A stretch of DNA of 64,000 nucleotides from IMGVR_UViG_3300004151_000006:186001-250000; one strand, 5' to 3'; shown: positions 3,056-43,784, numbered from the stretch's first letter. Translations and numbers: made by a program. Notes: generated by a model not told the origin, from the sequence alone.

Positions 3056-4669
3056 ATGGAATCATTCACGAGTCAGGATATCACAGATTTTGTTAAACTT
3101 ATTGTTGAAGCTGGTGGTGGGTATTATGTTGATGCTGATAATGTGATTCGAAGAGAGAAGACTAATGATATTTGGTGTATTGAAACAAATGATACTCCTC
3201 CGCGTAAAGTAAAATTGGTGATTTACAATCACAATCAAAAAGATTCAGATGTCATCATGGTCAATCCATTTATTGAAGGTTTGCAAACATCAAAAGAATT
3301 ACAGTGGTTTTATATCACTAAAAATCTTGTAGTGTCTGTGTATCTCAAATTGCTTTATATTAATATTATCAAAGAATGTTTGAAAGTCAAAGCTAATCAA
3401 GAACTTGATAGTAATATTGTGAAACTTATTTCACCCTATTTGGAAATGGTAGATGATAAGATGTATGCTGAAATTGAAACCATCACAGCTAAGATCCACA
3501 CATTCTGTGACATTTATTGGAATGTGAATAAGAAATCTAGTGAACTCAAAGTCAGTGTACTTTCTGAGAATTTTAGAAAATCTTTTGGTAAGAAGATCCG
3601 TCAGAAGACTTGGACATATCTCATTGAAGTGGCAAAAGCTATCTTTGGTACTGATGATCCATCTTCTGTTTATCGAATGAAATCAGATAATCATGGATGT
3701 GCTAAGTTTGAAGCATTCGCTCAAGTGTTCTTGATGGTATTTAAAGCTTATAGACCGTATTTTGTATTGACTCCTGATTTTAAAGCATTTGATTTTGAAG
3801 CTATGGAGAAGCATATCTCCATGATTCCACTTTATTATCATCGTGCTAAAAACCTTGTGTCTCCAGCTATTGTGGATCAAAAGAAAAAAGCTGTAACTCC
3901 AGCCAATCCTCCTTGGAAGCCAGTTCCAGTTATGGCTACCAATGTGGAATACATTCCACCGGCTGCACCAACAGTGGCGACTCCAGTCATTGGGTCTGCT
4001 CTCGGTACTCCGGTGACACCCACTCCAGTACCAGTACAACAAGCTACAATCCCGACAGCACAAGCCACCGTGCCGGCTATCCCTGTGGCAGTACAGCCGA
4101 TGGCTGCACCGACATATATGCAGCCACCTATCTCTGTGGGACATGCTGTCCAGGCTGCTATGATGGCACCCCAGATGATGAACAATATGTGGGGAGGGTA
4201 TCCCCAAAACCCTATGGTACAGCTGCCACCCATGCCCCAGGTGGCAGCTGTGGGCCAAATGGGTGCACCATACGGTAACATGCCCATGATGATGGGACAA
4301 CAGCAGTATCCCATGATGCAGCAGCCTGGAGCAATGCCCACTCTTGGTCAAGCTATGGGAACTGTACCACAGCAACCACAGATGTATCAGCAGCCCATGC
4401 CTGTAGGGTACCCCAATCAAATGGGATATCCCAATATGGGTATGCAGATGCAGCCAAATATGGGACTCATGGGTATGCCGCAACAGCAGCAAATGATGCC
4501 CATGCAGTATCAGGGTATGATGCCCCAACAGGGTATGTATCCTGGTCAATATCCTATGCAGCAGCAGATGATGCCTGCTAGTGATACCATGACGATGTCA
4601 TCAATTGGTGTGCCGATCCGTATGAGTAATAATCCTGATAATAATCGTGCAGCATATAAACGTGGATAA
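3056..4669 (+). CDS. phiKZ gp70-like core protein with a long Pro/Gln/Met/Gly low-complexity C-terminus
   Basis: N-terminus (DFVKLIVEAGGGYYVDADNVI...KLVIYN...NPFIEG) resembles the gp70 family and synteny fits; the last ~230 aa are PQMG-rich. Confidence 0.55.
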   Translation: MESFTSQDITDFVKLIVEAGGGYYVDADNVIRREKTNDIWCIETNDTPPRKVKLVIYNHNQKDSDVIMVNPFIEGLQTSKELQWFYITKNLVVSVYLKLLYINIIKECLKVKANQELDSNIVKLISPYLEMVDDKMYAEIETITAKIHTFCDIYWNVNKKSSELKVSVLSENFRKSFGKKIRQKTWTYLIEVAKAIFGTDDPSSVYRMKSDNHGCAKFEAFAQVFLMVFKAYRPYFVLTPDFKAFDFEAMEKHISMIPLYYHRAKNLVSPAIVDQKKKAVTPANPPWKPVPVMATNVEYIPPAAPTVATPVIGSALGTPVTPTPVPVQQATIPTAQATVPAIPVAVQPMAAPTYMQPPISVGHAVQAAMMAPQMMNNMWGGYPQNPMVQLPPMPQVAAVGQMGAPYGNMPMMMGQQQYPMMQQPGAMPTLGQAMGTVPQQPQMYQQPMPVGYPNQMGYPNMGMQMQPNMGLMGMPQQQQMMPMQYQGMMPQQGMYPGQYPMQQQMMPASDTMTMSSIGVPIRMSNNPDNNRAAYKRG

Positions 4670-4692
4670 TAGATTGATTCATTGATTATTGT

Positions 4693-4729
4693 GCTACAGA
4701 TAGGGAGCCTGGGGCTCCCTATCTGTAGC
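4693..4729. terminator. 17-bp stem hairpin after the gp70-like gene
   Basis: GCTACAGATAGGGAGCC-TGG-GGCTCCCTATCTGTAGC; T7 run about 20 nt downstream. Confidence 0.7.
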
Positions 4730-4775
4730 TTAAAGAGTATGTACATCTATTTTTTTATAAGGAGAATAAGACATT

Positions 4776-6338
4776 ATGGGAACAGAAAGCGGTACTATCG
4801 GAATAAAGCCATTAAAGCTATCACTGTATTTTGGTACAGCTGCAGCAGATAAAGAATTTAATGGTAGAGAAATCAAAGTTTATATCACAGATTTTCTTCC
4901 TTATCTGAGTGGTAAACTTGAAGCCACTGAAATAACATCAAAAGTTGGTTTAGAAGACGATAGATCTGATGGTGGATCTGGTGAAGCTAAACAAACTAAT
5001 ACTATCACTGCCACATATTCAGATCTATTCACTAATAGAAAGTGGCCACCTGATATACGTAAAGGTGAACAAGTATTTGTTTTCAATGTGGGGGACAGTG
5101 ATACATATTATTGGTTTTCACTTGGTAGAGATGATAAATTAAGGAGATGTGAAAAATTACGTTGGGAAATCTCAGATGATGTGCAATTTATAAAAGAACT
5201 CACCAATGACAATACTTGGTATGTGGAGATGGTTACTTTACCTGATGAAGAAGGTAACCCAGTAAAACAATTTGTTATATCTACTGCTAAATCTGATGGT
5301 GAAGAATTTAGATATTTGATTAGGATTGATGCGATAGCTAATACACTTCAAATCAATGATGATGCCGACAACATGATACTTATGGAATCTAAAGAGAAAC
5401 GTATATTTTTACGTAACACTGATGGTTGTAGTCTTGAATTAAATAAGAAAAATGCTGCTTTAGTTGCTGTAGATGAACTTACTCTTAAAGCTGGAAAATT
5501 GATAGTCTTTGATGGTCCATTATTAGCAGATCAACAAGATACTAAAGATAAAGCAGCTATCAAAATAGCAGATAATATACATTTCACTGCAAATGAATCA
5601 TTTGTCATTACGACACCCATGTTAGGTATACGTGGTCCGAAAAATGAAGATACTGGTGAAGAAGAACAAGTCAATGTGACTATCTGTGGTACACTCCTCA
5701 CCAAGATGTTTGCAGCTATGTGTACGAGTATGGTTAAGTTTGATCCGAGTGCTTGTGGTGAGAATCCATGTGAAGAAATTGACAGTGAAGAAGCCAATAA
5801 TAATGTAGAATCTTTAGTCATGCGATCTATAGCAATGTTTGGTGCAGAAACTAATACCTTAAAGAGCAGTGGACCTGATGAAGGTAACAGACCTGAAGAA
5901 CTCAAAGAAGAATTTGCTGATGGATGGGGAGCTGATGAATTGAGAGATGATTATCATTTCCATGATAGTAATGTACCATCTACAAGTGCTTCTGCTTATA
6001 ATGGTGTTGAAATAGATATAAATACTGCAAGTTGTAGTGAAACTGGTAATGAAAAAAACAGTGTAGATACTGAATCTGGTAGACACTTGGCTGCATGGGA
6101 TCAAATCACTTCAGCTTTAGATAGAAATTCTGTAGCCATTCAAAATATTCGTGAAGCCATTGATAGACTAGCTGAAGTAGTATTGGATACGAGTGATGGT
6201 TCTAATCCAGAAAAGCAATCTTCATATATGGATATATTAAATGAGATTAAACAAAAGACTGAATATGCCGATAAACTCGGTGTAGAAGCGAGAGTTCTTG
6301 GTGTCAATAGTTTTGTAAAAAATGGTCACACTGGATAA
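4776..6338 (+). CDS. Baseplate spike / cell-puncturing protein (phiKZ gp164-like, Gp5-type OB fold N-terminus)
   Basis: N-terminal IKVYITDFLPYLSGKL...TITATY...NRKWPPDIRKGEQVFVFNVGDSDTYYW matches the recalled gp164-type pattern; beta-rich middle; acidic C-terminal extension. Confidence 0.6.
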   Translation: MGTESGTIGIKPLKLSLYFGTAAADKEFNGREIKVYITDFLPYLSGKLEATEITSKVGLEDDRSDGGSGEAKQTNTITATYSDLFTNRKWPPDIRKGEQVFVFNVGDSDTYYWFSLGRDDKLRRCEKLRWEISDDVQFIKELTNDNTWYVEMVTLPDEEGNPVKQFVISTAKSDGEEFRYLIRIDAIANTLQINDDADNMILMESKEKRIFLRNTDGCSLELNKKNAALVAVDELTLKAGKLIVFDGPLLADQQDTKDKAAIKIADNIHFTANESFVITTPMLGIRGPKNEDTGEEEQVNVTICGTLLTKMFAAMCTSMVKFDPSACGENPCEEIDSEEANNNVESLVMRSIAMFGAETNTLKSSGPDEGNRPEELKEEFADGWGADELRDDYHFHDSNVPSTSASAYNGVEIDINTASCSETGNEKNSVDTESGRHLAAWDQITSALDRNSVAIQNIREAIDRLAEVVLDTSDGSNPEKQSSYMDILNEIKQKTEYADKLGVEARVLGVNSFVKNGHTG

Positions 6339-14504: not shown

Positions 14505-14534
14505 TGCATGGGTGGGGATATCCCCACCCATGCA
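14505..14534. terminator. Perfect 30-bp palindrome between convergent genes (bidirectional terminator candidate)
   Basis: TGCATGGGTGGGGAT|ATCCCCACCCATGCA. Confidence 0.7.
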
Positions 14535-16037
14535 TCAAGAGAACTTTATTATTTTTTTGTCTTGTACATATTTAACATTGTTGTTTAAACAGATATAAGC
14601 TTTTTCTAATTGAGTACCGACATACATGGCATGGCCTATATCAGATATACATTGGTTGATATAGAGAAGGTGTTGTATCTCTTGTGGGGTACACCCTTCA
14701 TAGTGTGCTAACTCTATATTTTCATGATCAAAATGATAAGCATGTATGAGCTTTTTATCTGGATCTGTAGTGATTTTAATATATCCATATCTATCTAATT
14801 TTATCCTTGGATGTCTAGTAAGATATGATTCTATTTGATTTGATATTTGACCAATATTGTTTGGATCAAGTGAAATAGAATGTGAGATGATAGTGAGCAA
14901 TCCGACATTTAATTCTGTTTGATAACAAACTCTTTTTAACACTAAAAATAAACCACAAGCATTTTTTATCCAAGCTAATGCACCATTGTGACTACGAAAG
15001 TTTACAGTCAAATGTACTTTATTATCTATCTTTCTAAAAAATAAAGATACCATACAGGGTCTACCTGATATGCGATTAATATCTTTAGTATTGTCCCAAA
15101 GAGTGATATAGCATCTTCTTCTATCACCAGGTAACATGAGTTCATGTATTACTTTTTGAAGATTGTTTTCATTGTTGAAATGTTTAGTGATCCTATTCCC
15201 ATAAGAATAGGTTTGACCTTCATCTATCTCAGGAGACATGAGTGTATCTGCATAACTTTTTAATTCAGCTTTAGTTAAATTACATTCTTTTAACTCCAGA
15301 TCTGTTAGATAATCTATACCTTCTGATTCAATTACCACTTTTAAATTAAGAAGTTCTTTTCTTTGTTTATCATTACTAAATTCTCTCATGACTCCAAATT
15401 TATTAAGCTTGAAGAGTACTTCTCTCCAAGCAGTGAGTACACATTTTTGAATGACTGTGTGTCCAGCTATATTGCTTGGTGCAGTATCAGATATAGCTAT
15501 TAATTCAGGAGATATTACCCTTTTCACAGATGGGTTATCTTTAGGGATATAATGATTGAGATAACTAAGTAGGAGTGGAAGATCAGTGATAGTATTTGTA
15601 GATATGATTTTGAAAGTAAAATTCCTATCTTTAAATTTATATGGTAAGATGAATGGATCTAATAAATATTTACCACAATCAGTATCTATGTAATGTTTAT
15701 CATATTCTACAATTTCTTCAGTGGATACATCTTTATATTGTTGGGTAGATTCAAATCGAAATACCTCATCATTAAAATACGCTTTTAAATAATCAGAGCC
15801 ATGTCCAAGTTCTTTACCAAACACCAACAATGTATCTATTTGTGGGTTGTATAAAAGATTTCTCAATAAAATATTTAATCCACCACCATAGAGTCCACCT
15901 ACTACACATACTGGTCCATTATGACTCAGTGTATTAATGATATTTTCTGGTGGAGACCAGAGGGTACAGATAGCTACTGTACCCTCTTGGTTTATAAGGT
16001 GGACACCTTTGGATGGATATAATAGTTTAATGGACAT
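14535..16037 (-). CDS. thyA: Thymidylate synthase-family protein fused to an N-terminal MtrA-like and a C-terminal DUF4346-like domain
   Basis: TS core: YSYGNRI, RRCYITLWD, catalytic PC (GRPCM), FRSHN, WIKN, HSISL. N-terminus VAICTLWS...GGLYGGGLNILLRNLLYNP; C-terminus DRYGYIKI...GHAMYVGTQLEKAY...KYVQD. Confidence 0.75.
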   Translation of the reverse strand: MSIKLLYPSKGVHLINQEGTVAICTLWSPPENIINTLSHNGPVCVVGGLYGGGLNILLRNLLYNPQIDTLLVFGKELGHGSDYLKAYFNDEVFRFESTQQYKDVSTEEIVEYDKHYIDTDCGKYLLDPFILPYKFKDRNFTFKIISTNTITDLPLLLSYLNHYIPKDNPSVKRVISPELIAISDTAPSNIAGHTVIQKCVLTAWREVLFKLNKFGVMREFSNDKQRKELLNLKVVIESEGIDYLTDLELKECNLTKAELKSYADTLMSPEIDEGQTYSYGNRITKHFNNENNLQKVIHELMLPGDRRRCYITLWDNTKDINRISGRPCMVSLFFRKIDNKVHLTVNFRSHNGALAWIKNACGLFLVLKRVCYQTELNVGLLTIISHSISLDPNNIGQISNQIESYLTRHPRIKLDRYGYIKITTDPDKKLIHAYHFDHENIELAHYEGCTPQEIQHLLYINQCISDIGHAMYVGTQLEKAYICLNNNVKYVQDKKIIKFS

Positions 16038-16584
16038 TGTCTATTAACAATGATGGAATGGTTCTAATGGATGATGTATTGAAAATACTATTAGTAAAAA
16101 CTTCGATACTTTCTGTAGTTAGAGTCAATTGTTCAAATGTATCAAATTCAGAGATAATAGAATTATCTGGCATTTTATTTGTATTTATTGAAACATATGG
16201 ATATTCATAATAAATATGTTTAACTCCAGCTCTATATAAAATCTCAGCACAATTGATACATGGTGATGTGGTGATATATACACTACCATTAATGACACTA
16301 TTCATCATATTTATAGTTCTTAAGTAATTGAGTGCATTTATTTCAGCATGAATAGAATTACAGAATAATTGTTTTTCAGCAGCTTCACGTTTCTTACAAT
16401 AGACTTTATCTTCAGTAGTTTTATCAATACAATGTTCTTCTCCAGATAATGCACCATTGTATCCAGTTGAAATGATTCGTTTATCATTCACGATCACACA
16501 TCCCACTTTACGTACAGAGCAAGTGGATCGTGAGCTCACGATCTTTGTAATGCACATAAAGTATTGATTCCAATCTGGTCTCAT
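16027..16584 (-). CDS. dCMP deaminase (ComEB/dCMP deaminase family)
   Basis: RSTCSVRKVGCVIV...STGYNG, HAEINAL and SPCINCA Zn motifs. Confidence 0.9.
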   Translation of the reverse strand: MRPDWNQYFMCITKIVSSRSTCSVRKVGCVIVNDKRIISTGYNGALSGEEHCIDKTTEDKVYCKKREAAEKQLFCNSIHAEINALNYLRTINMMNSVINGSVYITTSPCINCAEILYRAGVKHIYYEYPYVSINTNKMPDNSIISEFDTFEQLTLTTESIEVFTNSIFNTSSIRTIPSLLIDNVH

Positions 16585-16588
16585 GTAT

Positions 16589-17260
16589 TTACTCCTTTTC
16601 TTTGATTAGTCTATGTGTAGTTCTACCAGATACACCACTAAATACTGAGTTAAAATCTCTATATAAACTTTTATGATTTTGAATACGGGGCCAACGTTTG
16701 ATCATATCTTTAGGTACTGTATCATAGATCTTTACTTCATGCCAAGCCGGACATCCGGGATTCATCATATTTGGAATTGGATATGCATAATACGGATATT
16801 TGTTTAAAGTGGATGAGTTACCACCAATAACAACTATTTGAATATCACAGTGTTCTAACATAGAGAGATAGATACGGTGCATCCCATCACATATCAACCA
16901 ATTAAAATTACCATTTGACATAGTAGAACCTTCTACTATTGGAGGTAAAAGATCAATTTCAAATACACCACCAACATTAGGATATTTAACAGATAGGGTA
17001 ACATATCCATCAAGTTGAAACATATCGATATCGTGCGTCTTTAGTGAATAGTTTAAATTACGAATTTTAATCAATTCATCTTTAGATAAATAATATTGAC
17101 ATGGATAAAGTGTTTCATTTTGTTCATTATTAATTTCTAACCTAACATTACTATCTTTATAAATTTTAATATCTGGATAGCTCATTAAAGTCACTTGTTT
17201 CAATTTATTGATCAATATTTCCACATCATGATGCTTGATATCAATGATTTCCATTTCCAT
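16589..17260 (-). CDS. ParB/sulfiredoxin-fold protein, putative nucleotide-processing enzyme
   Basis: LLPPIVE...LICDGMHR motif. Confidence 0.55.
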   Translation of the reverse strand: MEMEIIDIKHHDVEILINKLKQVTLMSYPDIKIYKDSNVRLEINNEQNETLYPCQYYLSKDELIKIRNLNYSLKTHDIDMFQLDGYVTLSVKYPNVGGVFEIDLLPPIVEGSTMSNGNFNWLICDGMHRIYLSMLEHCDIQIVVIGGNSSTLNKYPYYAYPIPNMMNPGCPAWHEVKIYDTVPKDMIKRWPRIQNHKSLYRDFNSVFSGVSGRTTHRLIKEKE

Positions 17261-17943
17261 TAGTACATCCCCAATTGACGTCTGTGACTGACGTGTTGTA
17301 GTTGATCCATGTGTGCAAGAATTTGCTCATAAGTGGTCACTGAATATAAATTTTTATGTATTCCAGGTAACTCTTCAAGTTTATGATTAAACCAAATAGC
17401 TTTACCACCAAGCTTTAACATAGGGATAATATCATTGTCCCAATGATCACCTATGATACAAAGATTAGATACATTATATCCAAGATCATCAATCACTTTA
17501 CGATAGAATTCACCATAAGGTTTTCTACATCCCATTTCGTGACTAAGATATTTCTTTTTAGCATTAAGATTGAATTTGATGAAATTATCTCTGAATGCCC
17601 GATAAAAAGGTCCCCAAATATTAGAGACCAAACAATATTCAAATTCAGAATCGATTACACTATTAGTAAATTCTTTACTACCTTTCATTGGAAATGATTC
17701 TAATTCTTGATGTCGAATGATTTCCATAAGTGACACTTTATCTTTTAATTCAAATTCTATACCACAACGATATTCAATATTTCGAACAAGTCCATTGACA
17801 TCATTTCCATAATCCATAGTAAATAAGATTTTTTTGAGTATATCTTTTTTATTTTTTGAGATGTTGATATTTTGCATGATTTGTTGGACTGGTGGTTGTT
17901 TATTGTCTAATAGTGTTTGACCGATATCAAACATAAAGAACAT
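17260..17943 (-). CDS. HAD-superfamily hydrolase (nucleotidase-like)
   Basis: Motif I FDIGQTL, motif III KP, motif IV IGDHWDNDI; AGGAGG RBS. Confidence 0.85.
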   Translation of the reverse strand: MFFMFDIGQTLLDNKQPPVQQIMQNINISKNKKDILKKILFTMDYGNDVNGLVRNIEYRCGIEFELKDKVSLMEIIRHQELESFPMKGSKEFTNSVIDSEFEYCLVSNIWGPFYRAFRDNFIKFNLNAKKKYLSHEMGCRKPYGEFYRKVIDDLGYNVSNLCIIGDHWDNDIIPMLKLGGKAIWFNHKLEELPGIHKNLYSVTTYEQILAHMDQLQHVSHRRQLGMY

Positions 17944-18023
17944 AGGTTCCTCCTTTAGGATATATTTTTAACAATAAACTATTATGAGATTACAACAATG
18001 CATATAAAGTGATACAATAGATA

Positions 18024-18055
18024 TATGGATGCAGGCGTATACGCCTGCATCCATA
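18024..18055. terminator. Perfect 32-bp palindrome
   Basis: TATGGATGCAGGCGTA|TACGCCTGCATCCATA. Confidence 0.65.
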
Positions 18056-18064
18056 CAGTGTGGA

Positions 18065-29931: not shown

Positions 29932-30597
29932 ATGACACCATACCGAGATCCACGTGATATCCAAGAGTCCATCGTAGGACATATTCAAAATAGTTGCAAT
30001 GATTGGCCAGGTAAAATATCTACAGTCATCTTTTTATCTGGGTGTAATATCTTTTGTCCAACTTGTCATAATTGGGAGATAGCACATCCTCAAGGAAAAC
30101 TGGATAAAGTATTGCTAGATAATATCCTTATGTATATTCAAGCTAAAAGAAAATGGTTAGATGGAGTAGTCATTTCTGGTGGTGAACCTCTTATACACAA
30201 TAATCTGTCTGATTTAGTATTCCAACTCAAATCTATCTCTGATCTCCCCATCAAATTAGATACTAATGGATTGGATCCCGATGCATTAGATGAGATATTA
30301 GCTACCCAGTATATAGATACAGTCGCTATGGATATCAAAGCCTATTGGGATAAATATCCAACAGTCACTGGATGTAAACAAAAGGATCCAGAATATTTTC
30401 AACATCACATTGAAAGATCCATCCAAGTCATACAAGCTTATCAAGATGTTCACCTCTATTTTCGGACTACCTTGGTACCAGAGATCAATGATCCAATTTA
30501 TCTTGAACAAGTAAAGAGCATCATCCCGGCTGGGTATGTCCATAGGTATCAGACCTATAGACCCATTGACCACACCACTACCAAAGGATCACAGTAG
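29932..30597 (+). CDS. nrdG: Anaerobic ribonucleotide reductase activating radical-SAM enzyme
   Basis: CNIFCPTCHN (CxxxCxxC), GVVISGGEP, IKLDTNG, AMDIK, FRTT; directly upstream of nrdD. Confidence 0.9.
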   Translation: MTPYRDPRDIQESIVGHIQNSCNDWPGKISTVIFLSGCNIFCPTCHNWEIAHPQGKLDKVLLDNILMYIQAKRKWLDGVVISGGEPLIHNNLSDLVFQLKSISDLPIKLDTNGLDPDALDEILATQYIDTVAMDIKAYWDKYPTVTGCKQKDPEYFQHHIERSIQVIQAYQDVHLYFRTTLVPEINDPIYLEQVKSIIPAGYVHRYQTYRPIDHTTTKGSQ

Positions 30598-30598
30598 T

Positions 30599-33500
30599 AT
30601 GGAATCCCGTCAGATCGTCAAGCGTGATGGACGTATTGAATCTTGGTCCACACCTCGTATTGGTGATGCTATCTTTAAAGCATTCAAAGCTTCTGGTATC
30701 AAAGATCGAATGATGGCTGATAGACTCGCTAAGAAAGTAGCTGATAAAGTCTTTGAAGATGGTCGTGTCATGGTGGAACAAGAATTCGTACAGGATACAG
30801 TTGAATCTATTTTGATGAAATCGGGATTTGATGAAGTAGCTAGACGGTATATCATTTATCGTGAACAACGTAGAGCTATTCGATCAATGGATACTACATA
30901 CATGCTTGATAGTAAAGAAATTATTGATAGTTATTTAGATGAATCAGATTGGCGTGTAAATGAAAATGCTAATATTGGTATGAGTGTATCTGGTCTTATT
31001 CTTCATATGCAGGGTGAGATGCAGAAAAAATATGTACTCAATAGTGTATATACTAAAGAAATTCGAGAAGCACATATGAATGGGTATTTCCATATACATG
31101 ATTTATCATTCTCACTTGTCGCATACTGCTCAGGATGGTCATTTAGAGATCTCTTATTGGATGGATTTTCTATTAAAAATGCATGCGCTGCAGGACCTGC
31201 AAATCATTTTACTGCTGCACTCGGTCAGTGTGTGAATTTTCTTGGGACTTTACAAAATGAGTGGGCTGGTGCACAAGCATTAAACAATTTTGATACATAT
31301 CTTGCACCATTTATTCGACATGATGGTTTGGATTATGAACAAACTAAACAGGCTATTCAGAATTTTATTCACAGTATTAATACTACTTCTCGTTGGGGAG
31401 GACAATGTCCTTTCACCAATGTCACCATTGATGTAACTTGTCCTGAACATATGAAAAATGAACCCGTGATCATTGGTGGAAAATATCAAGAATCCACCTA
31501 TGGTGAATATCAAACTGAAATGAATATGTTCAATAATGCATTTGTTGAAATTTTAATGAAAGGTGATAATAATGGTTCAATTTTTTCATATCCTATTCCG
31601 ACGTATAATGTTACTAAAGATTTTCCTTGGGAAAGTGAAGTGGTGACCAATGTATTGGGTATGACTGCTAAATACGGTATTCCTTATTTTCAGAATTTTA
31701 TCAATAGTGATCTTGATCCTAAGGATATTCGTAGTATGTGTCCTCTCACTGGTGATACTAAGGTACTAGTCCGATCTACACGTAATTTTACACAAACTGC
31801 GGACATTAAAACAATTTATGAAAGGAGTGTTAAAAATAATTTAGTTTATGAAGTTTGGACACCCGAAGGTTGGTCCTTTGCACGTCCAGTAAAAATGCCC
31901 ATGACAGATGTGTATGAAATTACTCTCAGTAATGGTAGTACAATTAAAATGGGTGAAAATCATCTTCAGCCGGTGCGTGGAATAAATCAACTGGAGATCT
32001 TGTCGGCAAAAGATCTTAAAATGGATATGTGGATTCCGTATAATAAAGATGTAATTCCGAATTATGGCTTAGGAAATTATAGTCTTGGATATGCAGTTGG
32101 TGCTTATCTTGGTGATGGTTCGCTTACCTCTAAAGGTATTCTTTATTCCTTGAATCAAACTACTAAATTAAAGACCGCTTATGAATTGGCTGAAATTTGG
32201 GCATTCTTTGGTTTTAGTTCTAAATTGATTCCTTCTACTGATGGTGAATTGTTAACACTTAGAATTAATGGCCGTCCATGGGATTTAATTTCTGATTATG
32301 TTGGTGGAGATGGTGCTATAACAAAATATATTTCAGATGCAGTGTTTGATACTACTGAAGAATTTAAATTTGGACTTATTGATGGTCTAATGGATACCGA
32401 TGGATCTCGTGAAAAGAAACGTTTATATACTTCTTCTTTGGAACTTGTCAATACACTTAAAACACTCTTTACTCAGCTGGGAAAAAAATGTCGACTGTGT
32501 TCAGTGGATACTCGTGATGGTAGGCTGGGAACTGCGCCAAATTATTGTTTGAGTTTTACAGATAGAACTAGTTATGGTAATATGTTTAATGAAGATTCTG
32601 AATACAATTATTATTCAATTGTTAAAATTGAAAATTTAGGAAAACTTAATAATGAAGAATTGTATTGTTTTGAAGTGGCAAATGCTGATAACTTATTTAT
32701 GTTGGCTGACGGTATGATTACACACAACTGTCGATTGTCTCTTAACCTCAATGAAATTCGTAAGAAGACTGGTGGGTTATTTGGTGCTGGAGATCTGACT
32801 GGTTCAGTTGGTGTAACAACTCTCAATCTTTCTAAATTGGCATATCTTGCTCAAGATGAAAATGAATTTATGGATCTCATTACTGAATATGCTGATTTGG
32901 CTAAAGAATCTCTTGAGATTAAACGTAAATTTGTGAATAAACAATTAGAGTCTGGTCAGATGCCTTGGACTAAGAAATATCTTAAAAATGGATATGGTGG
33001 ACATTTTTCAACTATTGGCATTAATGCTGGACACGAAGCATGCATGAATCTTATTGGTAAAGGCATTGAAACTAAAGAAGGTACTGAACTCATGGTTCGA
33101 GTATTACAGCATCTTAATATACTTACCAAACAGTATCAAGAAGAAACTGGTAATCTCTATAATCTCGAGGCTGCACCTGCAGAAGGAGTAAGCTATCGAT
33201 TGGCTAAACTTGATAGAGAACTTTATGGTAAAAATATTTATATCAGTGGTAATGAAGAAACGCCATACTACACTAATTCTACAAATCTCCCCGTGAACCA
33301 CACCTCTGATGTATTTGAAGCATTGGAACATCAAGATAAATTACAACCTTTATATTCGGGTGGGACAGTTTTTCATTCCTTTTTTGGAGAAGCTATGCCC
33401 GATGTAGAATCAGTAAAAAACTTTCTAATCAAAGCTATGTCTATGACTAAGATTCCATATATTTCTATTACACCCACTTTTAGTATTTGTCCTGAACATA

Positions 33501-33709
33501 AATATATATCTGGTGAACATTTTGAATGTCCCAAATGTGGGTGTGAGACTAGCGTATATTCAAGAATCGTTGGCTATTTCAGAAGTATTTCTCGTTGGAA
33601 TGTTGGAAAAAAACAAGAATTCAAAGAAAGAAAAACATATGATATTGATTATACTGAGTTGAATTCTGAAATGAAAAATAGCACAGTCAACGAAAAGTTG
33701 GAAGTCTAA
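30599..33709 (+). CDS. nrdD: Class III ribonucleoside-triphosphate reductase with ATP cone, interrupted by an intein
   Basis: VKRDG ATP cone, HIHDL, QNEWAGAQA, RSMC[intein]CRL, YYTNS, CPEH...CPKC Zn site, glycyl-radical loop YSRIVGYF. Confidence 0.95.
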   Translation: MESRQIVKRDGRIESWSTPRIGDAIFKAFKASGIKDRMMADRLAKKVADKVFEDGRVMVEQEFVQDTVESILMKSGFDEVARRYIIYREQRRAIRSMDTTYMLDSKEIIDSYLDESDWRVNENANIGMSVSGLILHMQGEMQKKYVLNSVYTKEIREAHMNGYFHIHDLSFSLVAYCSGWSFRDLLLDGFSIKNACAAGPANHFTAALGQCVNFLGTLQNEWAGAQALNNFDTYLAPFIRHDGLDYEQTKQAIQNFIHSINTTSRWGGQCPFTNVTIDVTCPEHMKNEPVIIGGKYQESTYGEYQTEMNMFNNAFVEILMKGDNNGSIFSYPIPTYNVTKDFPWESEVVTNVLGMTAKYGIPYFQNFINSDLDPKDIRSMCPLTGDTKVLVRSTRNFTQTADIKTIYERSVKNNLVYEVWTPEGWSFARPVKMPMTDVYEITLSNGSTIKMGENHLQPVRGINQLEILSAKDLKMDMWIPYNKDVIPNYGLGNYSLGYAVGAYLGDGSLTSKGILYSLNQTTKLKTAYELAEIWAFFGFSSKLIPSTDGELLTLRINGRPWDLISDYVGGDGAITKYISDAVFDTTEEFKFGLIDGLMDTDGSREKKRLYTSSLELVNTLKTLFTQLGKKCRLCSVDTRDGRLGTAPNYCLSFTDRTSYGNMFNEDSEYNYYSIVKIENLGKLNNEELYCFEVANADNLFMLADGMITHNCRLSLNLNEIRKKTGGLFGAGDLTGSVGVTTLNLSKLAYLAQDENEFMDLITEYADLAKESLEIKRKFVNKQLESGQMPWTKKYLKNGYGGHFSTIGINAGHEACMNLIGKGIETKEGTELMVRVLQHLNILTKQYQEETGNLYNLEAAPAEGVSYRLAKLDRELYGKNIYISGNEETPYYTNSTNLPVNHTSDVFEALEHQDKLQPLYSGGTVFHSFFGEAMPDVESVKNFLIKAMSMTKIPYISITPTFSICPEHKYISGEHFECPKCGCETSVYSRIVGYFRSISRWNVGKKQEFKERKTYDIDYTELNSEMKNSTVNEKLEV
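31742..32728 (+). mobile_element. Intein with LAGLIDADG homing endonuclease in NrdD (start 31742 Pro or 31739 Cys)
   Basis: (C)PLTGDTKV block A, ENH block B, GAYLGDGS and GLMDTDGS LAGLIDADG motifs, YCFEV block F, ITHN|C splice junction. Confidence 0.9.
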
Positions 33710-33713
33710 TATA

Positions 33714-33743
33714 GAGTGGGGTGGGCAGTGGCCCACCCCACTC
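33714..33743. terminator. 13-bp stem hairpin after nrdD
   Basis: GAGTGGGGTGGGC-AGTG-GCCCACCCCACTC followed by ATTTACTTTTT. Confidence 0.7.
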
Positions 33744-33752
33744 CATTTACTT

Positions 33753-33768
33753 TTTAAACATATATTAT
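33753..33768 (+). promoter_or_regulatory. Putative early (vRNAP) promoter
   Basis: TTTAAACATATATTAT; same motif recurs upstream of many genes and resembles the phiKZ early core TATATTAC. Confidence 0.5.
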
Positions 33769-33803
33769 TTTAATGTATCCATAACTAAAATTCCTGGAGG
33801 AAT

Positions 33804-35312
33804 TTGTATATGCGGGCTATTTATAATGAAGATATGGATTTCTTTGATAAATCCATATCTGATGAACAGTGGTTTCTCAATAAAATTTTAGAAGGAAGAT
33901 TTGAATTATTAGAAAATGATACGGTGATCTATGATAAAGTAAGAAATACTCACAGAAAACCTGGAATAAAACATAATGGTGATACTCCATCCGTCCGGTA
34001 TAAAGTGTATGATATTAAAATTGCATCCCCACAACGTGGTAAGAGATCAATTTATCTTCATAAATTTGTATTTATATTTTATACAAAAAATATAGTACTA
34101 AAAAATACTTATTTAAAGTTTAAAGATGGGAATATTGGGAATACAAGTTTTGATAATTTGGAATTAGTATATAAACGAAAAGAAAATGATGATTTTTATA
34201 ATGATGAAATTTCTGCAAAGCAATGGTTTTATTCTGAAATTATAAAAGATCGTTTTGTATTATCTGAAAATGATACTAAAATATACGATAAGGTGCGAGA
34301 TAAATATGTCATACCTGGAGAATTTTCAATTTATTATAAAGACAATAAACGCAAAAAGAATTATCTTCGGTATTGCGTTGATTCTAGTATTCCGTATTAT
34401 AAAGAACGGTATATTCAATTGCATCAATTCGTTTGGATGTATTATCATAAACAATTGATACCTGAAGGACATGAGGTACACCATAAAGACGAAGATAAAC
34501 ACAATAATTGGCATGGAAATTTAGAACTGATATCTAATTTTGACCACATGCGACATCACAACAACAGTACAGAACGTCGACAAAAATTGACATCTCCTGA
34601 AAGTATAGCTCGACAAGTGAAACATAGACTATTATATCGAATGTTAAAACATAAGTATTGTTTTTCTGAAAAGAAGCTTTGTAGTAAGTGTAAAAGGTTA
34701 TTACCATTTATACGTTTTGATAAAGCAAACGAACAAAATTATATTTTAAAGTTAGAATCACTATGTAAAGAATGTAAATATATTTTATATGGGGACAATA
34801 AAAAGAACATAGACCGCTATCAATTCCCATCCGGGGTTTTATCAGATAAAATTGTTCTTGATATAAGATTTTTATTTAACATTGTAAATCAATCTTTCTA
34901 TCTTGTACAAAAGAAGTATCCTAACATTTCTAAACAAGATCTTAAAGATATCATTCTAGGTAATACATACACTCACATAGATACACTTCATGGTATCCAC
35001 GATACTCCTTATAGAAATGAAAAATATATCAATCAAATTGAACACTGTCATATACAACATGCATACAAACAGGCTGATTTCACTCCAGAAGAGTTATCCA
35101 AGATCTATGGAAGATCATTAAATGAAATTATCTATGTACTTACCGTAGGAAGGTATAGACCAGAAATAGAAATGGTAATGGATGTGCAGAAGTATGTGAA
35201 ACTATATAACGGGATATATACACAGCGTGAAGAATATATAATTGATTTCAATAAACTCAAGGAACGTGATATTAGTATCCCCACCAATGTGGTAGCTGGT
35301 GAATTAGTTTAA
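33804..35312 (+). CDS. Free-standing HNH homing endonuclease with two HNH-like modules
   Basis: LHKFVF...FKDGNIGNTSFDNLEL and LHQFVW...VHHKDEDKHNNWHGNLEL; CSKC/CKEC Zn pairs. Confidence 0.75.
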   Translation: MYMRAIYNEDMDFFDKSISDEQWFLNKILEGRFELLENDTVIYDKVRNTHRKPGIKHNGDTPSVRYKVYDIKIASPQRGKRSIYLHKFVFIFYTKNIVLKNTYLKFKDGNIGNTSFDNLELVYKRKENDDFYNDEISAKQWFYSEIIKDRFVLSENDTKIYDKVRDKYVIPGEFSIYYKDNKRKKNYLRYCVDSSIPYYKERYIQLHQFVWMYYHKQLIPEGHEVHHKDEDKHNNWHGNLELISNFDHMRHHNNSTERRQKLTSPESIARQVKHRLLYRMLKHKYCFSEKKLCSKCKRLLPFIRFDKANEQNYILKLESLCKECKYILYGDNKKNIDRYQFPSGVLSDKIVLDIRFLFNIVNQSFYLVQKKYPNISKQDLKDIILGNTYTHIDTLHGIHDTPYRNEKYINQIEHCHIQHAYKQADFTPEELSKIYGRSLNEIIYVLTVGRYRPEIEMVMDVQKYVKLYNGIYTQREEYIIDFNKLKERDISIPTNVVAGELV

Positions 35313-39942: not shown

Positions 39943-40150
39943 ATCTACTTTATATTTTTTAATAAAAGTACGACATTCATTACGCTATAAATATATATCA
40001 TCTATGCGAAGACACATAGATGATGATGTCTCGGGGACTCGACATGATCATTTGTGTGAATCAAATCGAATATCATCACATGGTGTGATGAATACGATGG
40101 GTCATATAACCCAAATACTTTTAGTCTTAAACTTTCTCAGGAGTATACTC

Positions 40151-42295
40151 ATGGCTAAGATCATCTTTCTTATCATGGTGTCAATGTTGTTAGCAGATCA
40201 TAGCTTTGGTCAGACCAAAAACAATGATCTCCCCACAGTGGAAGAAGTACAGGATAATATCCAAAGATCTGGTAAGCAGTGGACAGCTAAACGCAATAGA
40301 TTCATGGATATGAGTCAGGCTGAGATCGATGCCACACATGGAGCAGATGATTGGTCTACTCTCTCCAGAGATATGGATCTCAAAGGTTTAGAGGGTTCTC
40401 CATATGACAAAGATGTCACTGGTGTCCTCACTGATAATCCCCTTCCATCAGCACATGATTGGAGGAATCATAATGGAAAAGATTATACTACTCCAACCAA
40501 ATATCAATCCAGCTGTGGTGCATGTGTCACATTTGCAACAGTTGCTATATGGGAAACACTCCTTAAGATTCAGTACTTGGATGAAAGACCTTCATTCAAT
40601 CCGGATCTCAGTGAACAGTTTATAGTTTCATGTCCATTACCGAAATCTTGTTTTGGAGTCAATCCAACTTTTACAATACCGGATATGGTACAAAACGGTA
40701 CTTATTCGGAGACATACATCCCATACATTGCAAAGCCAGTACCTTGCAGTGAAGTGACAAGCGGTGTTGATCTTACAAAGATTGGGCATTATCGTGTTAT
40801 GAATTATGAACATGTGGTTGTGTATGAACCCGGTGGAGATGATGTGAGTATTGACATGTTAAAACGTATGTTGGTGGAGATTGGACCATTTTTCACAGTG
40901 ATGATGCAATACGATGATTTCTATCTTTATGCGGGTGGAGTATATTCCACAACACCAACTGCGAGTTATCGTGGGCTTCATGCCGTCTGTGTGATTGGGT
41001 ATGATGATGCTGAACAATGTTTCATTGTGAAAAATTCATGGGGAGATTGGTGGGGAATAAATGGTTATTTTAAGATAGCCTATTCAGAAGCTACAAAATT
41101 ATCCCGTACTACATTTGGCTTAGATACATGGGCATTTTCTGGTGCTGTCATTGATCGTGAAGAACCAGAGCAAGAGATACCCCCAATAGCCAAAGTCATA
41201 AACTTTCCCACAGGTACAATATATGCACATGATCGGGTGTACAATGTAACTTCTGAACCAGCAACTGCAGTATCATTTGCTTTTCGTACTGATGGTGGTA
41301 CCTGGAGTGAACAGATACCCATTTTAGGATCTTTGTGGATCTATGATCCCACTGATGGTCCACATACACTTGAAGTGATTACATGTAGTGTATCTGGTGC
41401 TTGTCAATCTAAAAATGATCCCACTACATATCATTGGATCAATGATACTACACCTCCAGAATTTATCAATATCACCAATCCACCAGCTGCTATCACTGAT
41501 GTCACATCTTACGTATTCAATGTCACTGCGAGTGCAGATACTGTAAAATATATGTGGGCATCTGATTTAATAAGTGGCTGGTCTGCTATGCTACCAATAT
41601 CAAATGCAACTATCACTTTAAATGATGTCCCCGATGGTAAACATTATATTATTCTGGTAGCCAGTGATGTAATCGATAATTACAGTGAGCACACTCGGGT
41701 GGAATGGACGGTATCGAGTAAAATCACAGCATTGTTAAGTGATCTCCCAAATATCAAAACTACAGATACTTCAACACGGATCACGGTATCTTCTAATTCA
41801 TCAAAATACATTGGATATCGATATCGTCTTGATGGTAGTATGTGGTCTGCAACTGCAGATAAAGATACAAAGATACAGTTATCTGGGTTATCAACAGGTG
41901 TACATACTCTTGAAGTAATTGCAGTGGGGAGTGACGGTAGTATTCAAGATGAAACTGCTACTTCAATGTATGCTTGGATAATTGAAGAAGCCGCTGCAGC
42001 TGTAGCAGTATTGCAAAATCCACCTGATTCAGTATCTACCGCATCGAAATATCAACTGTATGTTGGTGGGGAAAATACCGTGGCATATAAATATTCTATC
42101 GATGGTCAACCTTTATCACAGGAGTATGATATCAACACACCTATCAATTTGACACTTTCATCGGGCCTGCACATACTCCGGTTGTCAGGAAAGAATAATG
42201 CTGGTGTATGGCAAGAAAGTTATACCACTAACAGTTGGACAGTCAAACGGTCTACTGTAAACCTTGGTGCAGTCTATCAGCTATTATTGAATTAA
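40151..42295 (+). CDS. Secreted papain-family (C1A) cysteine protease with C-terminal Ig-like domains
   Basis: CAGGAG RBS; signal peptide MAKIIFLIMVSMLLA; QSSCGAC (Gln/Cys), GLHAVCVIGY (His), KNSWG (Asn); repeated beta-rich domains; hydrophobic C-terminus VNLGAVYQLLLN. Confidence 0.85.
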   Translation: MAKIIFLIMVSMLLADHSFGQTKNNDLPTVEEVQDNIQRSGKQWTAKRNRFMDMSQAEIDATHGADDWSTLSRDMDLKGLEGSPYDKDVTGVLTDNPLPSAHDWRNHNGKDYTTPTKYQSSCGACVTFATVAIWETLLKIQYLDERPSFNPDLSEQFIVSCPLPKSCFGVNPTFTIPDMVQNGTYSETYIPYIAKPVPCSEVTSGVDLTKIGHYRVMNYEHVVVYEPGGDDVSIDMLKRMLVEIGPFFTVMMQYDDFYLYAGGVYSTTPTASYRGLHAVCVIGYDDAEQCFIVKNSWGDWWGINGYFKIAYSEATKLSRTTFGLDTWAFSGAVIDREEPEQEIPPIAKVINFPTGTIYAHDRVYNVTSEPATAVSFAFRTDGGTWSEQIPILGSLWIYDPTDGPHTLEVITCSVSGACQSKNDPTTYHWINDTTPPEFINITNPPAAITDVTSYVFNVTASADTVKYMWASDLISGWSAMLPISNATITLNDVPDGKHYIILVASDVIDNYSEHTRVEWTVSSKITALLSDLPNIKTTDTSTRITVSSNSSKYIGYRYRLDGSMWSATADKDTKIQLSGLSTGVHTLEVIAVGSDGSIQDETATSMYAWIIEEAAAAVAVLQNPPDSVSTASKYQLYVGGENTVAYKYSIDGQPLSQEYDINTPINLTLSSGLHILRLSGKNNAGVWQESYTTNSWTVKRSTVNLGAVYQLLLN

Positions 42296-42305
42296 TCTAT
42301 GATGA

Positions 42306-42331
42306 CATGGGGGACCATTCGGTCCCCCATG
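42306..42331. terminator. 11-bp stem hairpin
   Basis: CATGGGGGACC-ATTC-GGTCCCCCATG. Confidence 0.6.
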
Positions 42332-42427
42332 CCCTTACAAATGCTACTCATTTTTTTATAAATATATATCATAAAATTGAATGTGGATTAAAATCTGATT
42401 AACACTTTAACAATGAGGTAAAATGTT

Positions 42428-42652
42428 TTGGCTGGAAATTTATGTTCATTAATTGCTGTGACTGGTAAAGGCCGTGGTCCCCGTCAACCTGAAGTCAGGC
42501 CCGACACTGGACGTGAAGCTGTCATCTCCTTACATCAGCGTAAGGGGATGGTTACCTGCAAAGTGTGTAAGACACGATTTCCTCGATTTAAGATGAAGCA
42601 TGGGTTATGCCCATTCTGTCATCACGACCGGAAACAGAAGATTGAGGATTGA
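42428..42652 (+). CDS. Small Zn-ribbon protein, 74 aa
   Basis: CKVC...CPFC; GAGGT RBS, TTG start. Confidence 0.55.
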   Translation: MAGNLCSLIAVTGKGRGPRQPEVRPDTGREAVISLHQRKGMVTCKVCKTRFPRFKMKHGLCPFCHHDRKQKIED

Positions 42653-42657
42653 TTTTA

Positions 42658-43324: not shown

Positions 43325-43329
43325 GGTCA

Positions 43330-43772: not shown

Positions 43773-43784
43773 TCGCATGCTAGT

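Follow-up and report, generated by a model that had tools for sequence, protein, structure and literature searches.

A predicted alternative thymidylate-synthesis operon in a freshwater jumbo phage

Why would a freshwater jumbo phage carry a thymidylate synthase (TS) embedded between two unrelated domains and packed together with a ParB-like protein, and does this set of genes make ordinary thymidylate or a modified pyrimidine? Here, we address this question for a four-gene block in a 287-kb phage genome, starting from a 64,000-nucleotide stretch of it (IMGVR_UViG_3300004151_000006:186001-250000; hereafter the window). A sequence-only reading of the window had described one minus-strand operon of a HAD phosphatase, a ParB/Srx-fold protein with a DGMHR motif, a dCMP deaminase and a TS fused to MtrA-like and DUF4346-like domains, and had proposed either non-canonical dTMP synthesis with a different C1 carrier or synthesis of a modified pyrimidine. 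What that reading saw in the sequence is confirmed by our analysis, while its interpretation is only partly supported, with the first option favoured and the second disfavoured. The block was copied whole from anaerobic, sulfate-reducer-like bacteria and most likely makes ordinary thymidylate using an unusual TS, and we found no paper describing the system.

Anatomy of the operon and its encoded proteins

The four open reading frames are tightly packed, with junctions consisting of a 1-nt overlap, a 4-nt gap and an 11-nt overlap, and the unit is bracketed by two strong hairpins. The features, all on the minus strand, are as follows.

17981-18057 (-): upstream boundary, with a 16-bp hairpin (18057-18022) after the preceding gene, followed by a promoter-like site (18008-17981) identified by a consensus scan only
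17260-17943 (-): HAD-superfamily hydrolase, 227 aa
16589-17260 (-): ParB-CE protein ("ParB-like catalytic effector"), 223 aa, motif NDGMHR
16027-16584 (-): dCMP deaminase, 185 aa
14535-16037 (-): three-domain thymidylate synthase fusion, 500 aa
15525-16037 (-): residues 1-171 of the fusion, predicted MtrA-like Rossmann-type domain
14826-15473 (-): residues 189-404 of the fusion, methanogen-type ThyA-fold catalytic domain
14559-14798 (-): residues 414-493 of the fusion, PterinBD-DUF4346 domain
14505-14534 (-): downstream boundary, a 13-bp, GC-rich hairpin directly after the TS stop codon

The HAD-like protein scores just below the Pfam cut-offs of the HAD families, although its bacterial orthologues pass them, and its nearest NCBIfam families are pyrimidine 5'-nucleotidase-like HAD-IA proteins (PynA, YjjG, TIGR02253), all below cut-off. 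In the family alignment D6, G8, T10, S107, K141, D166 and D171 are invariant, such that the nucleophile Asp6 and motifs II-IV (S107, K141, D166, D171) are present, but motif I reads D-x-G and lacks the Asp+2 general acid/base of HAD phosphatases. The ParB-CE protein matches PF24392 at 1.2e-38 (132.8 bits against a cut-off of 23), and D125, G126, H128 and R129 of its DGMHR motif (residues 125-129) are invariant. Its AlphaFold model has pLDDT 91.6, and the nine best structural matches of the model are all ParB/Srx members, led by sulfiredoxin (Z 6.0) and free serine kinase (Z 5.5). The deaminase matches PF00383 at 2.7e-19 (69.4 bits against 25) and phrog_174 dCMP deaminase at 6.9e-39, is ComEB-like in NCBIfam, has intact HAE and PCxxC zinc motifs and would supply dUMP.

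For the fusion, 207 homologues share the same length and architecture and 249 species genomes encode a relative. Its AlphaFold model has pLDDT 93.8 and pTM 0.88. In this model the N-terminal domain matches MtrA with cobalamin (5laa_B) at Z 14.7, with rmsd 2.3 A over 144 of 159 residues, while unrelated folds reach about Z 6. Sequence support for this domain is weak, as a profile search against PDB sequences gave E 0.014 to MtrA, the window protein has no Pfam MtrA (PF04208) hit and only 3 of 96 family members hit that family, weakly. Further, the MtrA cobalt ligand His84 and its partner Glu54 are not conserved and align to Ser/Ala/Gly and to Tyr, respectively (PMC4915002). The C-terminal domain matches PF14251 at 2.6e-15 (57.4 bits against a cut-off of 29.6), as do all 96 of 96 family members, and has invariant D415, G418, Y446, H469 and A470. 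The same region matches the C-terminal part of a 390-aa MtrA paralogue (NF002128) and of the DHPS-like protein TIGR00284.

The catalytic domain matches PF00303 at 1e-10, above the cut-off but covering profile positions 89-255 only, and TIGR03283 at 3.5e-27, below the cut-off of that family. Its best structural matches are 9iqc_A (Z 23.1), MilA (21.5) and ThyA (20; 20.1 for Brucella ThyA). Aligned with E. coli ThyA by hhalign (probability 91%), the motifs read as the sequence-only reading had described them, with Cys328 of the PC motif corresponding to Cys146, Asn359 of WIKN to the dUMP-specifying Asn177, and Asn351 of FRSHN standing where ThyA has Asp169. The catalytic Cys328 and the dUMP-binding residues Tyr279, Arg307, Arg348 and Asn359 (Tyr94, Arg126', Arg166 and Asn177 in ThyA) are each conserved in 96 of 96 sequences. 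In contrast, the folate-handling Asp169 is replaced in all 96 (94 Asn, 1 Ser, 1 Arg), Cys168 is replaced by an invariant His350 (96 of 96), and the 3'-OH-binding His207 and Tyr209 align to Ser389 and Asp391, although this stretch of the alignment is less certain. The C-terminal carboxylate that closes over the cofactor in ThyA is not free here, as the chain continues into DUF4346.

Distribution in phages and anaerobic bacteria

The arrangement is not due to chance and is not phage-specific. Comparison of gene neighbourhoods, which had been suggested beforehand as a check, showed that related jumbo-phage contigs carry the block next to the same helicase and RNA-polymerase genes, and that the same genes occur in dozens of bacterial genomes, mostly Desulfobacterota. 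In 80 bacterial loci examined, always on the same strand, the deaminase is near the fusion in 34, ParB-CE in 31 and HAD in 21, and twelve loci have all four genes. The order of the phage (HAD, ParB-CE, deaminase, TS) is seen, for example, in two Desulfovibrionaceae MAGs (loci L010 and L015) and in Desulfonema magnum (L024). In a FastTree tree the phage clade is nested, with support 100, among Desulfovibrionaceae and termite-gut Deltaproteobacteria MAGs inside Desulfobacterota, although the phage enzymes are only 36-40% identical to the nearest bacterial ones and could have drifted in function.

In 12 fusion-bearing genomes, several of them complete chromosomes, neither ThyX nor canonical ThyA was found. 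In nine of these the fusion is the only TS-fold gene found, while the remaining three (G007, G008 and G011) also carry a short, weak TS-like match. ParB-CE is present in exactly one copy in 12 of 12 of these genomes, even when unlinked to the fusion, and in 0 of 14 control genomes, whereas a HAD orthologue is present in only 7 of 12, always beside the TS gene. In a sample of 201 Desulfobacterota genomes, ThyX is in 125, canonical ThyA in 3-4, a stand-alone short TS in about 55 and the fusion in 11. All 11 fusion-bearing genomes of this sample have ParB-CE, and all 15 ParB-CE genomes lack ThyX. Many of the bacterial genomes are MAGs, and apparent absences are therefore soft. Based on this pattern, the fusion probably serves as the housekeeping dTMP synthase of its bacterial carriers.

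The replaced active-site residues co-vary with ParB-CE in both fused and stand-alone TS. Stand-alone TS in ParB-CE genomes (loci L101-L103) read FRSWN and have lost the H-x-Y pair, while those in ParB-CE-free genomes (L105-L112) read FRSWD and keep H-L-Y. Additionally, three-domain fusions in four near-complete viral genomes keep FRSND and AHIY and have no ParB-CE. The association has one exception, as one small, complete viral genome (L088) has the Asn-type fusion without ParB-CE.

In the phage itself an anaerobic ribonucleotide reductase (NrdD) is present, while ThyX, DHFR and dUTPase were not found. Limited searches of the 287-kb genome, which covered no other kinase or transferase families, returned no Tmk or Tet/JBP family match, and no glycosyltransferase appears among the window proteins that were scanned.

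Interpretation and competing explanations

We consider it fairly likely that the four genes are one transcription unit, taken whole by this jumbo-phage lineage from an anaerobic, Desulfovibrionales-like bacterium, and that they form a self-contained route from dCMP to dUMP to dTMP. In this view, the deaminase makes dUMP and the fusion methylates dUMP at C5 using the normal ThyA nucleophile and substrate machinery, an enzyme that in bacteria would take the place of both ThyA and ThyX. In the phage it would raise the dTTP supply for a genome of about 67% A+T, replicated in an anaerobic host, and the DNA is expected to contain ordinary thymine. The chemistry is probably non-canonical, with the folate-handling Asp169 and the 3'-OH-binding His207/Tyr209 pair replaced. 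Asp169Asn is reported not to open the CH2-THF imidazolidine ring (title of PDB 1bjg) and marks a switch of cofactor in other TS homologues (PMC13326640). As the replaced residues go with the presence of ParB-CE and not with the MtrA-like domain, we infer that ParB-CE, a predicted ParB/Srx-fold and probably NTP-using protein, takes part in the TS reaction cycle itself rather than only feeding it substrate, and that the MtrA-like/DUF4346 module holds or delivers the C1 or reducing cofactor. The HAD enzyme would be an optional accessory, probably a nucleotidase that trims pyrimidine pools.

Our data establish the anatomy of the block, its conservation, its transfer from bacteria, the mutual exclusion with ThyX and the co-variation of residues with ParB-CE. 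On the other hand, dTMP as the product, from whichever donor, the involvement of ParB-CE in catalysis and a cofactor role for the flanking domains, including any binding of a cobamide, are inferred without biochemical evidence, the product from the pattern of gene presence and absence. A structure prediction of the complex between the fusion and ParB-CE gave no answer. Moreover, the best structural neighbour of the TS domain is a flavin-dependent dCMP 5-hydroxylase that also carries Asp169Asn, and a non-methyl product therefore cannot be excluded from sequence alone.

A bolder reading, which we regard as possible but tentative, is that the fusion and ParB-CE together form a third mechanistic class of thymidylate synthase, widespread in anaerobic bacteria and captured by jumbo phages. 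Such a ThyA-fold enzyme would have given up classical CH2-THF to DHF chemistry, would draw its C1 unit or reducing power from a cofactor held by the MtrA-like/DUF4346 module (a cobamide, a flavin or an unusual pterin) and would need an NTP-dependent step carried out by a ParB/Srx-fold protein. The different C1 carrier proposed by the sequence-only reading is, in this regard, plausible but unproven.

It is unlikely, but not ruled out, that the fusion is an ordinary folate-dependent ThyA turning CH2-THF into DHF, with flanking domains that are only structural or regulatory, or that bind or recycle the pterin in the way DHFR does in DHFR-TS fusions, with ParB-CE as an upstream nucleotide pyrophosphatase or NTPase supplying dCMP and HAD as a nucleotidase. 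The nucleotide-binding and nucleophile residues are all conserved, DUF4346 is labelled a pterin-binding domain in Pfam and also occurs fused to DHPS-like proteins, whose products, like the DHF made by TS, are dihydropterins, and three-domain fusions with canonical Asp169 and His/Tyr residues exist in other viruses. A route from dCTP to dCMP to dUMP to dTMP would also parallel phage T4 nucleotide metabolism. However, Asp169 is never retained in the 96 family members, a change that cripples canonical TS (title of PDB 1bjg), and the C-terminal carboxylate is not free. Further, a mere substrate supplier would be useful with any TS, yet in the genomes searched ParB-CE occurs only with the Asn-type TS and never alongside ThyX.

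Slightly less probable still is the mechanistic sub-hypothesis of a cobamide-dependent thymidylate synthase, in which the MtrA-like domain holds a cobamide and a methyl group is passed from methyl-cob(III)amide to the Cys-activated C5 of dUMP. The only known function of the MtrA fold is corrinoid binding in methyl transfer (PMC4915002), the MtrA-like/DUF4346 module is also fused to pterin-binding barrels, like the MtrH-MtrA pair, and the loss of Asp169 fits a donor that needs no ring opening. The carriers are corrinoid-rich anaerobes, as eleven of 16 have CobS and 4 of the 5 without it have B12 riboswitches. Against this stand the unconserved His84/Glu54 dyad and the marginal similarity to the MtrA sequence family. 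Additionally, fusions with a canonical folate-type active site carry the same MtrA-like domain while stand-alone Asn-type TS lack it altogether, and the domain is therefore not tied to the unusual active site.

The least likely alternative is a modified pyrimidine for hypermodified phage DNA, with the Asn169-type TS homologue acting as a flavin-dependent dUMP 5-hydroxylase or as a hydroxymethylase and with ParB-CE and HAD processing the nucleotide; although Asp169Asn is the published diagnostic residue of flavin-dependent 5-hydroxy-dCMP synthases (PMC13326640), such an enzyme (9iqc_A) is the best structural match and ParB-like proteins are obligate activators of phage thymine dioxygenases (PMC13229309), this reading is disfavoured by the block being a probable bacterial housekeeping module transferred en bloc, by its strictly anaerobic carriers, which must make dTMP and cannot rely on O2-dependent hydroxylation, by the anaerobic ribonucleotide reductase of the phage, by the retained dUMP-specifying Asn and, within limited searches, by the absence of Tmk, Tet/JBP and glycosyltransferase matches. 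The co-occurrence of TS paralogues, ParB-like pyrophosphatases and HAD enzymes in phage hypermodification, on which the sequence-only reading drew, is not the relevant context here.

Comparison with known systems

Canonical ThyA (EC 2.1.1.45, PF00303) shares the predicted fold (Z about 20), the catalytic Cys in a Pro-Cys motif, Tyr94, Arg126', Arg166 and Asn177, and the inferred substrate (dUMP) and product (dTMP). The fusion differs in the Asp169, His207 and Tyr209 replacements, the invariant His350 next to Asn351, an N-terminal third of the TS too diverged for Pfam to detect, the lack of a free C-terminus, the two extra flanking domains and the dependence, by co-occurrence, on a ParB-like protein. 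Methanogen-type TS (TIGR03283) is the best sequence family for the catalytic domain, matched over nearly the whole profile, and is the short form of the fold, with cofactor use that is also poorly known (PMC9012536). However, the score is below the family cut-off (95.2 against 174.55 bits), the protein is a three-domain fusion rather than a stand-alone protein of about 200-250 aa, and stand-alone members in Desulfobacterota keep Asp169 and His/Tyr and lack the Arg126/127 pair, while the fusion does the opposite.

Flavin-dependent ThyX fills the same niche, as the fusion/ParB-CE system and ThyX exclude each other in the genomes searched and both occur in organisms that mostly lack FolA, but its fold is unrelated and it uses no enzyme nucleophile, whereas the fusion keeps the ThyA cysteine. 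The phage 5-hydroxy-dCMP synthases (HY126 AfhB, RB69 gp48; PDB 9iqc/9iqu) are short TS-fold proteins that share the Asp169 to Asn change, which there accompanies a switch from folate to flavin. Those enzymes have Asn177 changed to Asp (dCMP-specific), need O2, stand alone and feed glycosylated DNA bases, while here Asn177 is kept in 96 of 96 and the carriers are strict anaerobes. MtrA, the corrinoid subunit of methyl-H4MPT:coenzyme M methyltransferase, shares the predicted fold of the N-terminal domain and an aligned NP-x-I segment, but the cobalt-ligating dyad is not conserved, there is no membrane anchor and the sequence similarity is marginal.

In the bifunctional DHFR-TS of protists and plants and the phage T4 cd/td/frd nucleotide genes, TS is likewise fused or clustered with enzymes that service its substrates or cofactor, and phages carrying a dCMP deaminase plus TS to raise dTTP is an established theme. 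Here, the fused domains are unrelated to DHFR, no DHFR was found in the phage and the partner is a predicted ParB/Srx-fold protein. Finally, the ParB-dependent thymine dioxygenases of phages (PMC13229309) are a precedent for a ParB-fold protein acting as the obligate partner of a pyrimidine C5-modifying enzyme. That ParB has nucleotide-binding and dimerisation domains and acts with an Fe/2OG dioxygenase on DNA, while ParB-CE is a 200-aa single-domain family found with a nucleotide-level TS in cellular genomes.

Gene content of the jumbo phage window and its four-gene block

The window is positions 186001-250000 of a 286,688-bp IMG/VR virus record with inverted terminal repeats, and it encodes split multisubunit RNA-polymerase beta-like proteins, a baseplate protein, an anaerobic ribonucleotide reductase (NrdD) and a 2608-aa repeat protein. 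It is therefore a jumbo phage. The G+C content is about 30-36% in most of the window, and the DNA carrying the block is present in three freshwater metagenome runs. BLAST of the region and of the fusion protein against the INPHARED phage collection gave no match. The relevant features are as follows (window coordinates).

18057-18022: 16-bp hairpin preceding the first gene of the block
18008-17981: promoter-like site preceding the first gene
17943-14535 (-): four ORFs, with a 1-nt overlap, a 4-nt gap and an 11-nt overlap at their junctions
14534-14505: 13-bp GC-rich hairpin following the last stop codon
7277-11501 (+): two adjacent ORFs matching phage multisubunit RNA-polymerase beta-subunit families (phrog_3295 at 1e-128, phrog_3015 at 2e-96), typical of phiKZ-like jumbo phages; the same pair flanks the operon in the related contigs L002 and L003
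19920-27746 (-): the 2608-aa protein, made of more than 20 tandem repeats of about 95 aa with a recurring 'INTLP...FSKS...RG..V.FTV...DG' pattern, probably a giant fibre or adhesin, followed by a 415-aa and a 165-aa ORF without any family match
30536-35312 (+): 1057-aa NrdD-like anaerobic ribonucleotide reductase with an internal stretch (about residues 610-750) that hits a terminase-like family and may be an intein or an insertion; an HNH endonuclease ORF of 502 aa lies directly downstream
4001-6000, 40001-44000 and 52001-54000: islands of higher G+C (0.40-0.43) against a background of about 0.31-0.35

Pfam, PHROG and NCBIfam scans of the block identified a HAD-like hydrolase scoring just under the Pfam cut-offs, a ParB-CE protein (PF24392, 1.2e-38), a dCMP deaminase (PF00383 at 2.7e-19 and phrog_174 at 6.9e-39), and a 500-aa protein carrying a partial thymidylate synthase (TS) match (PF00303, 1e-10) and DUF4346 (PF14251, 2.6e-15). 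The AlphaFold model of the 500-aa protein, built on 96 homologues, is confident (pLDDT 93.8, pTM 0.88), and a search of this model against 48,161 solved chains resolved three domains. Residues 1-171 match MtrA with bound cobalamin at Z 14.7 and an rmsd of 2.3 A over 144 residues, while unrelated folds reach about Z 6. Residues 189-404 are predicted to adopt a TS fold, with Z 23.1 to 9iqc_A, 21.5 to MilA and about 20 to ThyA, whereas residues 416-488 have only weak matches. The sequence-only reading had described this four-gene block, including the tripartite fusion, the DGMHR motif of the ParB/Srx-fold protein and a TS domain with the catalytic Cys, WIKN and RSHN motifs, and all of these are present; its observation is thus confirmed.

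Distribution of the block and thymidylate synthase genes in bacteria

A word-based search returned 207 proteins of the same length and architecture as the fusion. The nearest four (46-79% identity) are phage-like, while the rest come from Desulfobacterota, Synergistaceae, Nitrospinota and others, and are labelled by their sources as 'thymidylate synthase' or 'DUF4346 protein'. Related phage contigs carry HAD, ParB-CE, deaminase and fusion in the same order, beside the same helicase and RNA-polymerase genes, and bacterial chromosomes carry the same partners. In a scan of one genome per species, 249 genomes had a relative of the fusion. In the 80 loci kept, and always on the same strand, the deaminase lies nearby in 34, ParB-CE in 31 and HAD in 21, and twelve loci have all four genes. 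The gene order of the phage recurs, for example, in two Desulfovibrionaceae MAGs (loci L010 and L015) and in Desulfonema magnum. Clustering the ORFs of the 80 loci revealed no other gene family consistently linked to the block, but only lineage-specific synteny with a sigma-54 regulator, a GAF protein, hydrolases and UvrD. In Thermodesulforhabdus norvegica (locus L004, 1-8000), the deaminase-fusion-HAD genes directly follow, on the same strand, three genes of an NADH-dehydrogenase/ferredoxin-type module (2Fe-2S thioredoxin-like, Complex1_51K, Fer2_4). A link to electron supply is possible, but this arrangement did not appear among the recurrent neighbour families of the 80 GTDB loci.

In a FastTree phylogeny, the five phage sequences form one clade that is nested, with support 100, alongside Desulfovibrionaceae and termite-gut Deltaproteobacteria MAGs inside Desulfobacterota diversity. 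The tree is a quick one and composition bias was flagged, but taken with the shared gene order it points to transfer of the whole block from bacteria to the phage lineage.

In 12 fusion-bearing genomes, several of them complete chromosomes, ThyX was found in none, and the PF00303 matches were the fusion itself plus three short weak hits in genomes G007, G008 and G011. Two of the 12 fusions (genomes G001 and G009) are too diverged for PF00303 to detect at all. We also examined an even sample of 201 Desulfobacterota genomes.

Table. Features detected in 201 Desulfobacterota genomes.
Feature: number of genomes
ThyX: 125
Canonical ThyA: 3-4
Stand-alone short methanogen-type TS: about 55
Three-domain fusion: 11
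ParB-CE: 15

ParB-CE is present in all 11 fusion-bearing genomes of this sample and in four others, and none of the 15 ParB-CE genomes has ThyX. With ThyX in 62% of the sample, fifteen misses in a row would be very unlikely if the genomes were independent, which related genomes are not fully. Among the 12 fusion-bearing genomes, ParB-CE is present exactly once in each, even when unlinked to the fusion, while it is present in none of 14 control genomes. An orthologue of the HAD enzyme is present in only 7 of the 12, and HAD was therefore rejected as a core component.

FolA is absent from 8 of the 12 fusion-bearing genomes, but as it is rare in the whole phylum (15 of 201) and appears in none of the listed stand-alone short-TS genomes, its absence does not discriminate. 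Of the about 55 genomes of the phylum sample that rely on a stand-alone short TS of 224-310 aa of the methanogen type (FRSWD, without the Arg126/127 pair), those checked show no FolA or ThyX match. Similarly, CobS is missing in 5 of 16 fusion-bearing genomes, but 4 of those 5 have cobalamin riboswitches, and the phyletic pattern of cobamide synthesis is thus uninformative.

Active-site replacements and their co-variation with ParB-CE

The fusion was aligned to E. coli ThyA with hhalign (probability 91%), and the residues were counted by column across the 96 family members, with the alignment being less certain at the last two positions of the table.

Table. Correspondence of E. coli ThyA residues to the phage fusion and their conservation in the family.
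E. coli ThyA; phage fusion; conservation
Tyr94; Tyr279; 96/96
Arg126'; Arg307; 96/96
Cys146; Cys328; 96/96
Arg166; Arg348; 96/96
Asn177; Asn359; 96/96
Cys168; His350; 96/96
Asp169; Asn351; 94/96 (1 Ser, 1 Arg; never Asp)
His207; Ser389; 74 Ser, 18 Thr
Tyr209; Asp391; 89 Asp

These replacements go with ParB-CE. Three Desulfobacterota genomes (G087, G178 and G149, loci L101-L103) have ParB-CE but no fusion, no ThyX and no canonical ThyA, and carry a 239-aa stand-alone methanogen-type TS that reads FRSWN and has lost the His-x-Tyr pair. No MtrA-like or DUF4346 domain was found in them. In L101 and L102 this gene lies directly upstream of a ThiC homologue, and the short weak TS-like matches of G007, G008 and G011, which do have the fusion, are similar. 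Stand-alone TS from ParB-CE-free genomes, in contrast, read FRSWD and keep His-Leu-Tyr. Conversely, four near-complete viral genomes carry three-domain fusions that read FRSND and keep Ala-His-Ile-Tyr, and none of them has ParB-CE. These large viruses (L091-L094, IMG/VR contigs of 90-154 kb) carry a distant (24-26% identity) MtrA-like/TS/DUF4346 fusion with the canonical FRSND and AHIY motifs, a second, folate-type version of the fusion. ParB-CE thus goes with the loss of Asp169 and His207/Tyr209 in both architectures, and not with the MtrA-like domain, which led us to reject a role for ParB-CE as a corrinoid re-activating ATPase. One exception was seen, a 55-kb complete viral genome with an Asn-type fusion and no ParB-CE, which could rely on a host copy.

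ParB-CE is a family of about 200-aa single-domain proteins named 'ParB-like catalytic effector' in UniRef, and no domain fusions were found among the 120 best of 902 homologues. A sequence search against solved structures gave nothing significant. However, the nine nearest solved structures to its model (pLDDT 91.6) are all ParB/Srx proteins, led by sulfiredoxin and the free serine kinases, with Z scores that are modest (up to 6.0) but stand well clear of the unrelated rows, which reach at most about 3. A complex prediction for the fusion with ParB-CE scored 0.00 and gave no answer, which is not evidence either way.

Inferred function and comparison with known thymidylate synthases

The simplest reading of these patterns is that the fusion plus ParB-CE is the thymidylate synthase system of these organisms, with the deaminase as the usual feeder enzyme and the D-x-G HAD enzyme as an optional accessory. 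While the block, its conservation and the co-variation with ParB-CE were observed directly, this function is inferred, as are an NTP-dependent role of ParB-CE within the TS cycle and a cofactor held by the MtrA-like/DUF4346 module. The interpretation offered by the sequence-only reading, either non-canonical dTMP synthesis or synthesis of a modified pyrimidine, was supported in part, namely in its first alternative.

In the phage, no match to ThyX, DHFR, Tmk-type kinase, dUTPase or Tet/JBP was found, while NrdD is present. A complete dCMP to dUMP to dTMP block would suit a genome of about 67% A+T replicating in an anaerobe, and with no Tmk-type kinase of its own the phage would depend on host kinases, which fits a canonical product. 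We therefore expect ordinary thymine in the DNA, and the inference, if it holds, also argues for an anaerobic host related to Desulfobacterota. A modified base remains possible but is unlikely, and is retained mainly because Asp169Asn and the nearest structure come from base-modifying enzymes.

Searches of the literature for DUF4346, PterinBD, ParB-CE, and TS in combination with ParB, MtrA or corrinoid found no description of the system, although subscription-only papers were not covered, and the Pfam names ParB-CE and PterinBD show that the domains have been catalogued, so that an unpublished or subscription-only description may exist. Thymidylate synthesis is thought to have two solutions, ThyA and ThyX, both of which are drug targets, whereas the fusion-bearing anaerobes examined appear to have neither. 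If the inference holds, the system fills a gap in the metabolic reconstruction of sulfate reducers, syntrophs, Armatimonadota and others, affecting at least 249 species genomes, gives the ParB/Srx fold a role in nucleotide metabolism, and offers a tractable system for asking which cofactor methanogen-type TS enzymes use.

Among known families, the catalytic domain belongs most closely to the methanogen-type TS family TIGR03283 (3.5e-27, below the cut-off), whose cofactor use is itself described as little known (PMC9012536). The DUF4346 region also matches the C-terminal part of a 390-aa MtrA paralogue and of a DHPS-like archaeal protein, and the MtrA-like domain and DUF4346 therefore look like one module into which the TS domain is inserted. 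The MtrA cobalt ligand His84 and its partner Glu54 (PMC4915002) align to Ser/Ala/Gly and to Tyr in this family. With regard to Asp169, the title of PDB entry 1bjg states that the Asp221(169)Asn mutant does not promote opening of the cofactor's imidazolidine ring, and a 2026 paper uses Asp169Asn as the diagnostic residue of TS homologues that switched from folate to flavin and hydroxylate dCMP (PMC13326640). The system described here, shared between anaerobic bacteria and jumbo phages, thus retains the ThyA fold in its predicted structure but differs from ThyA in its remodelled active site, its two extra domains and a ParB-fold partner that is, judged by co-occurrence, obligate.
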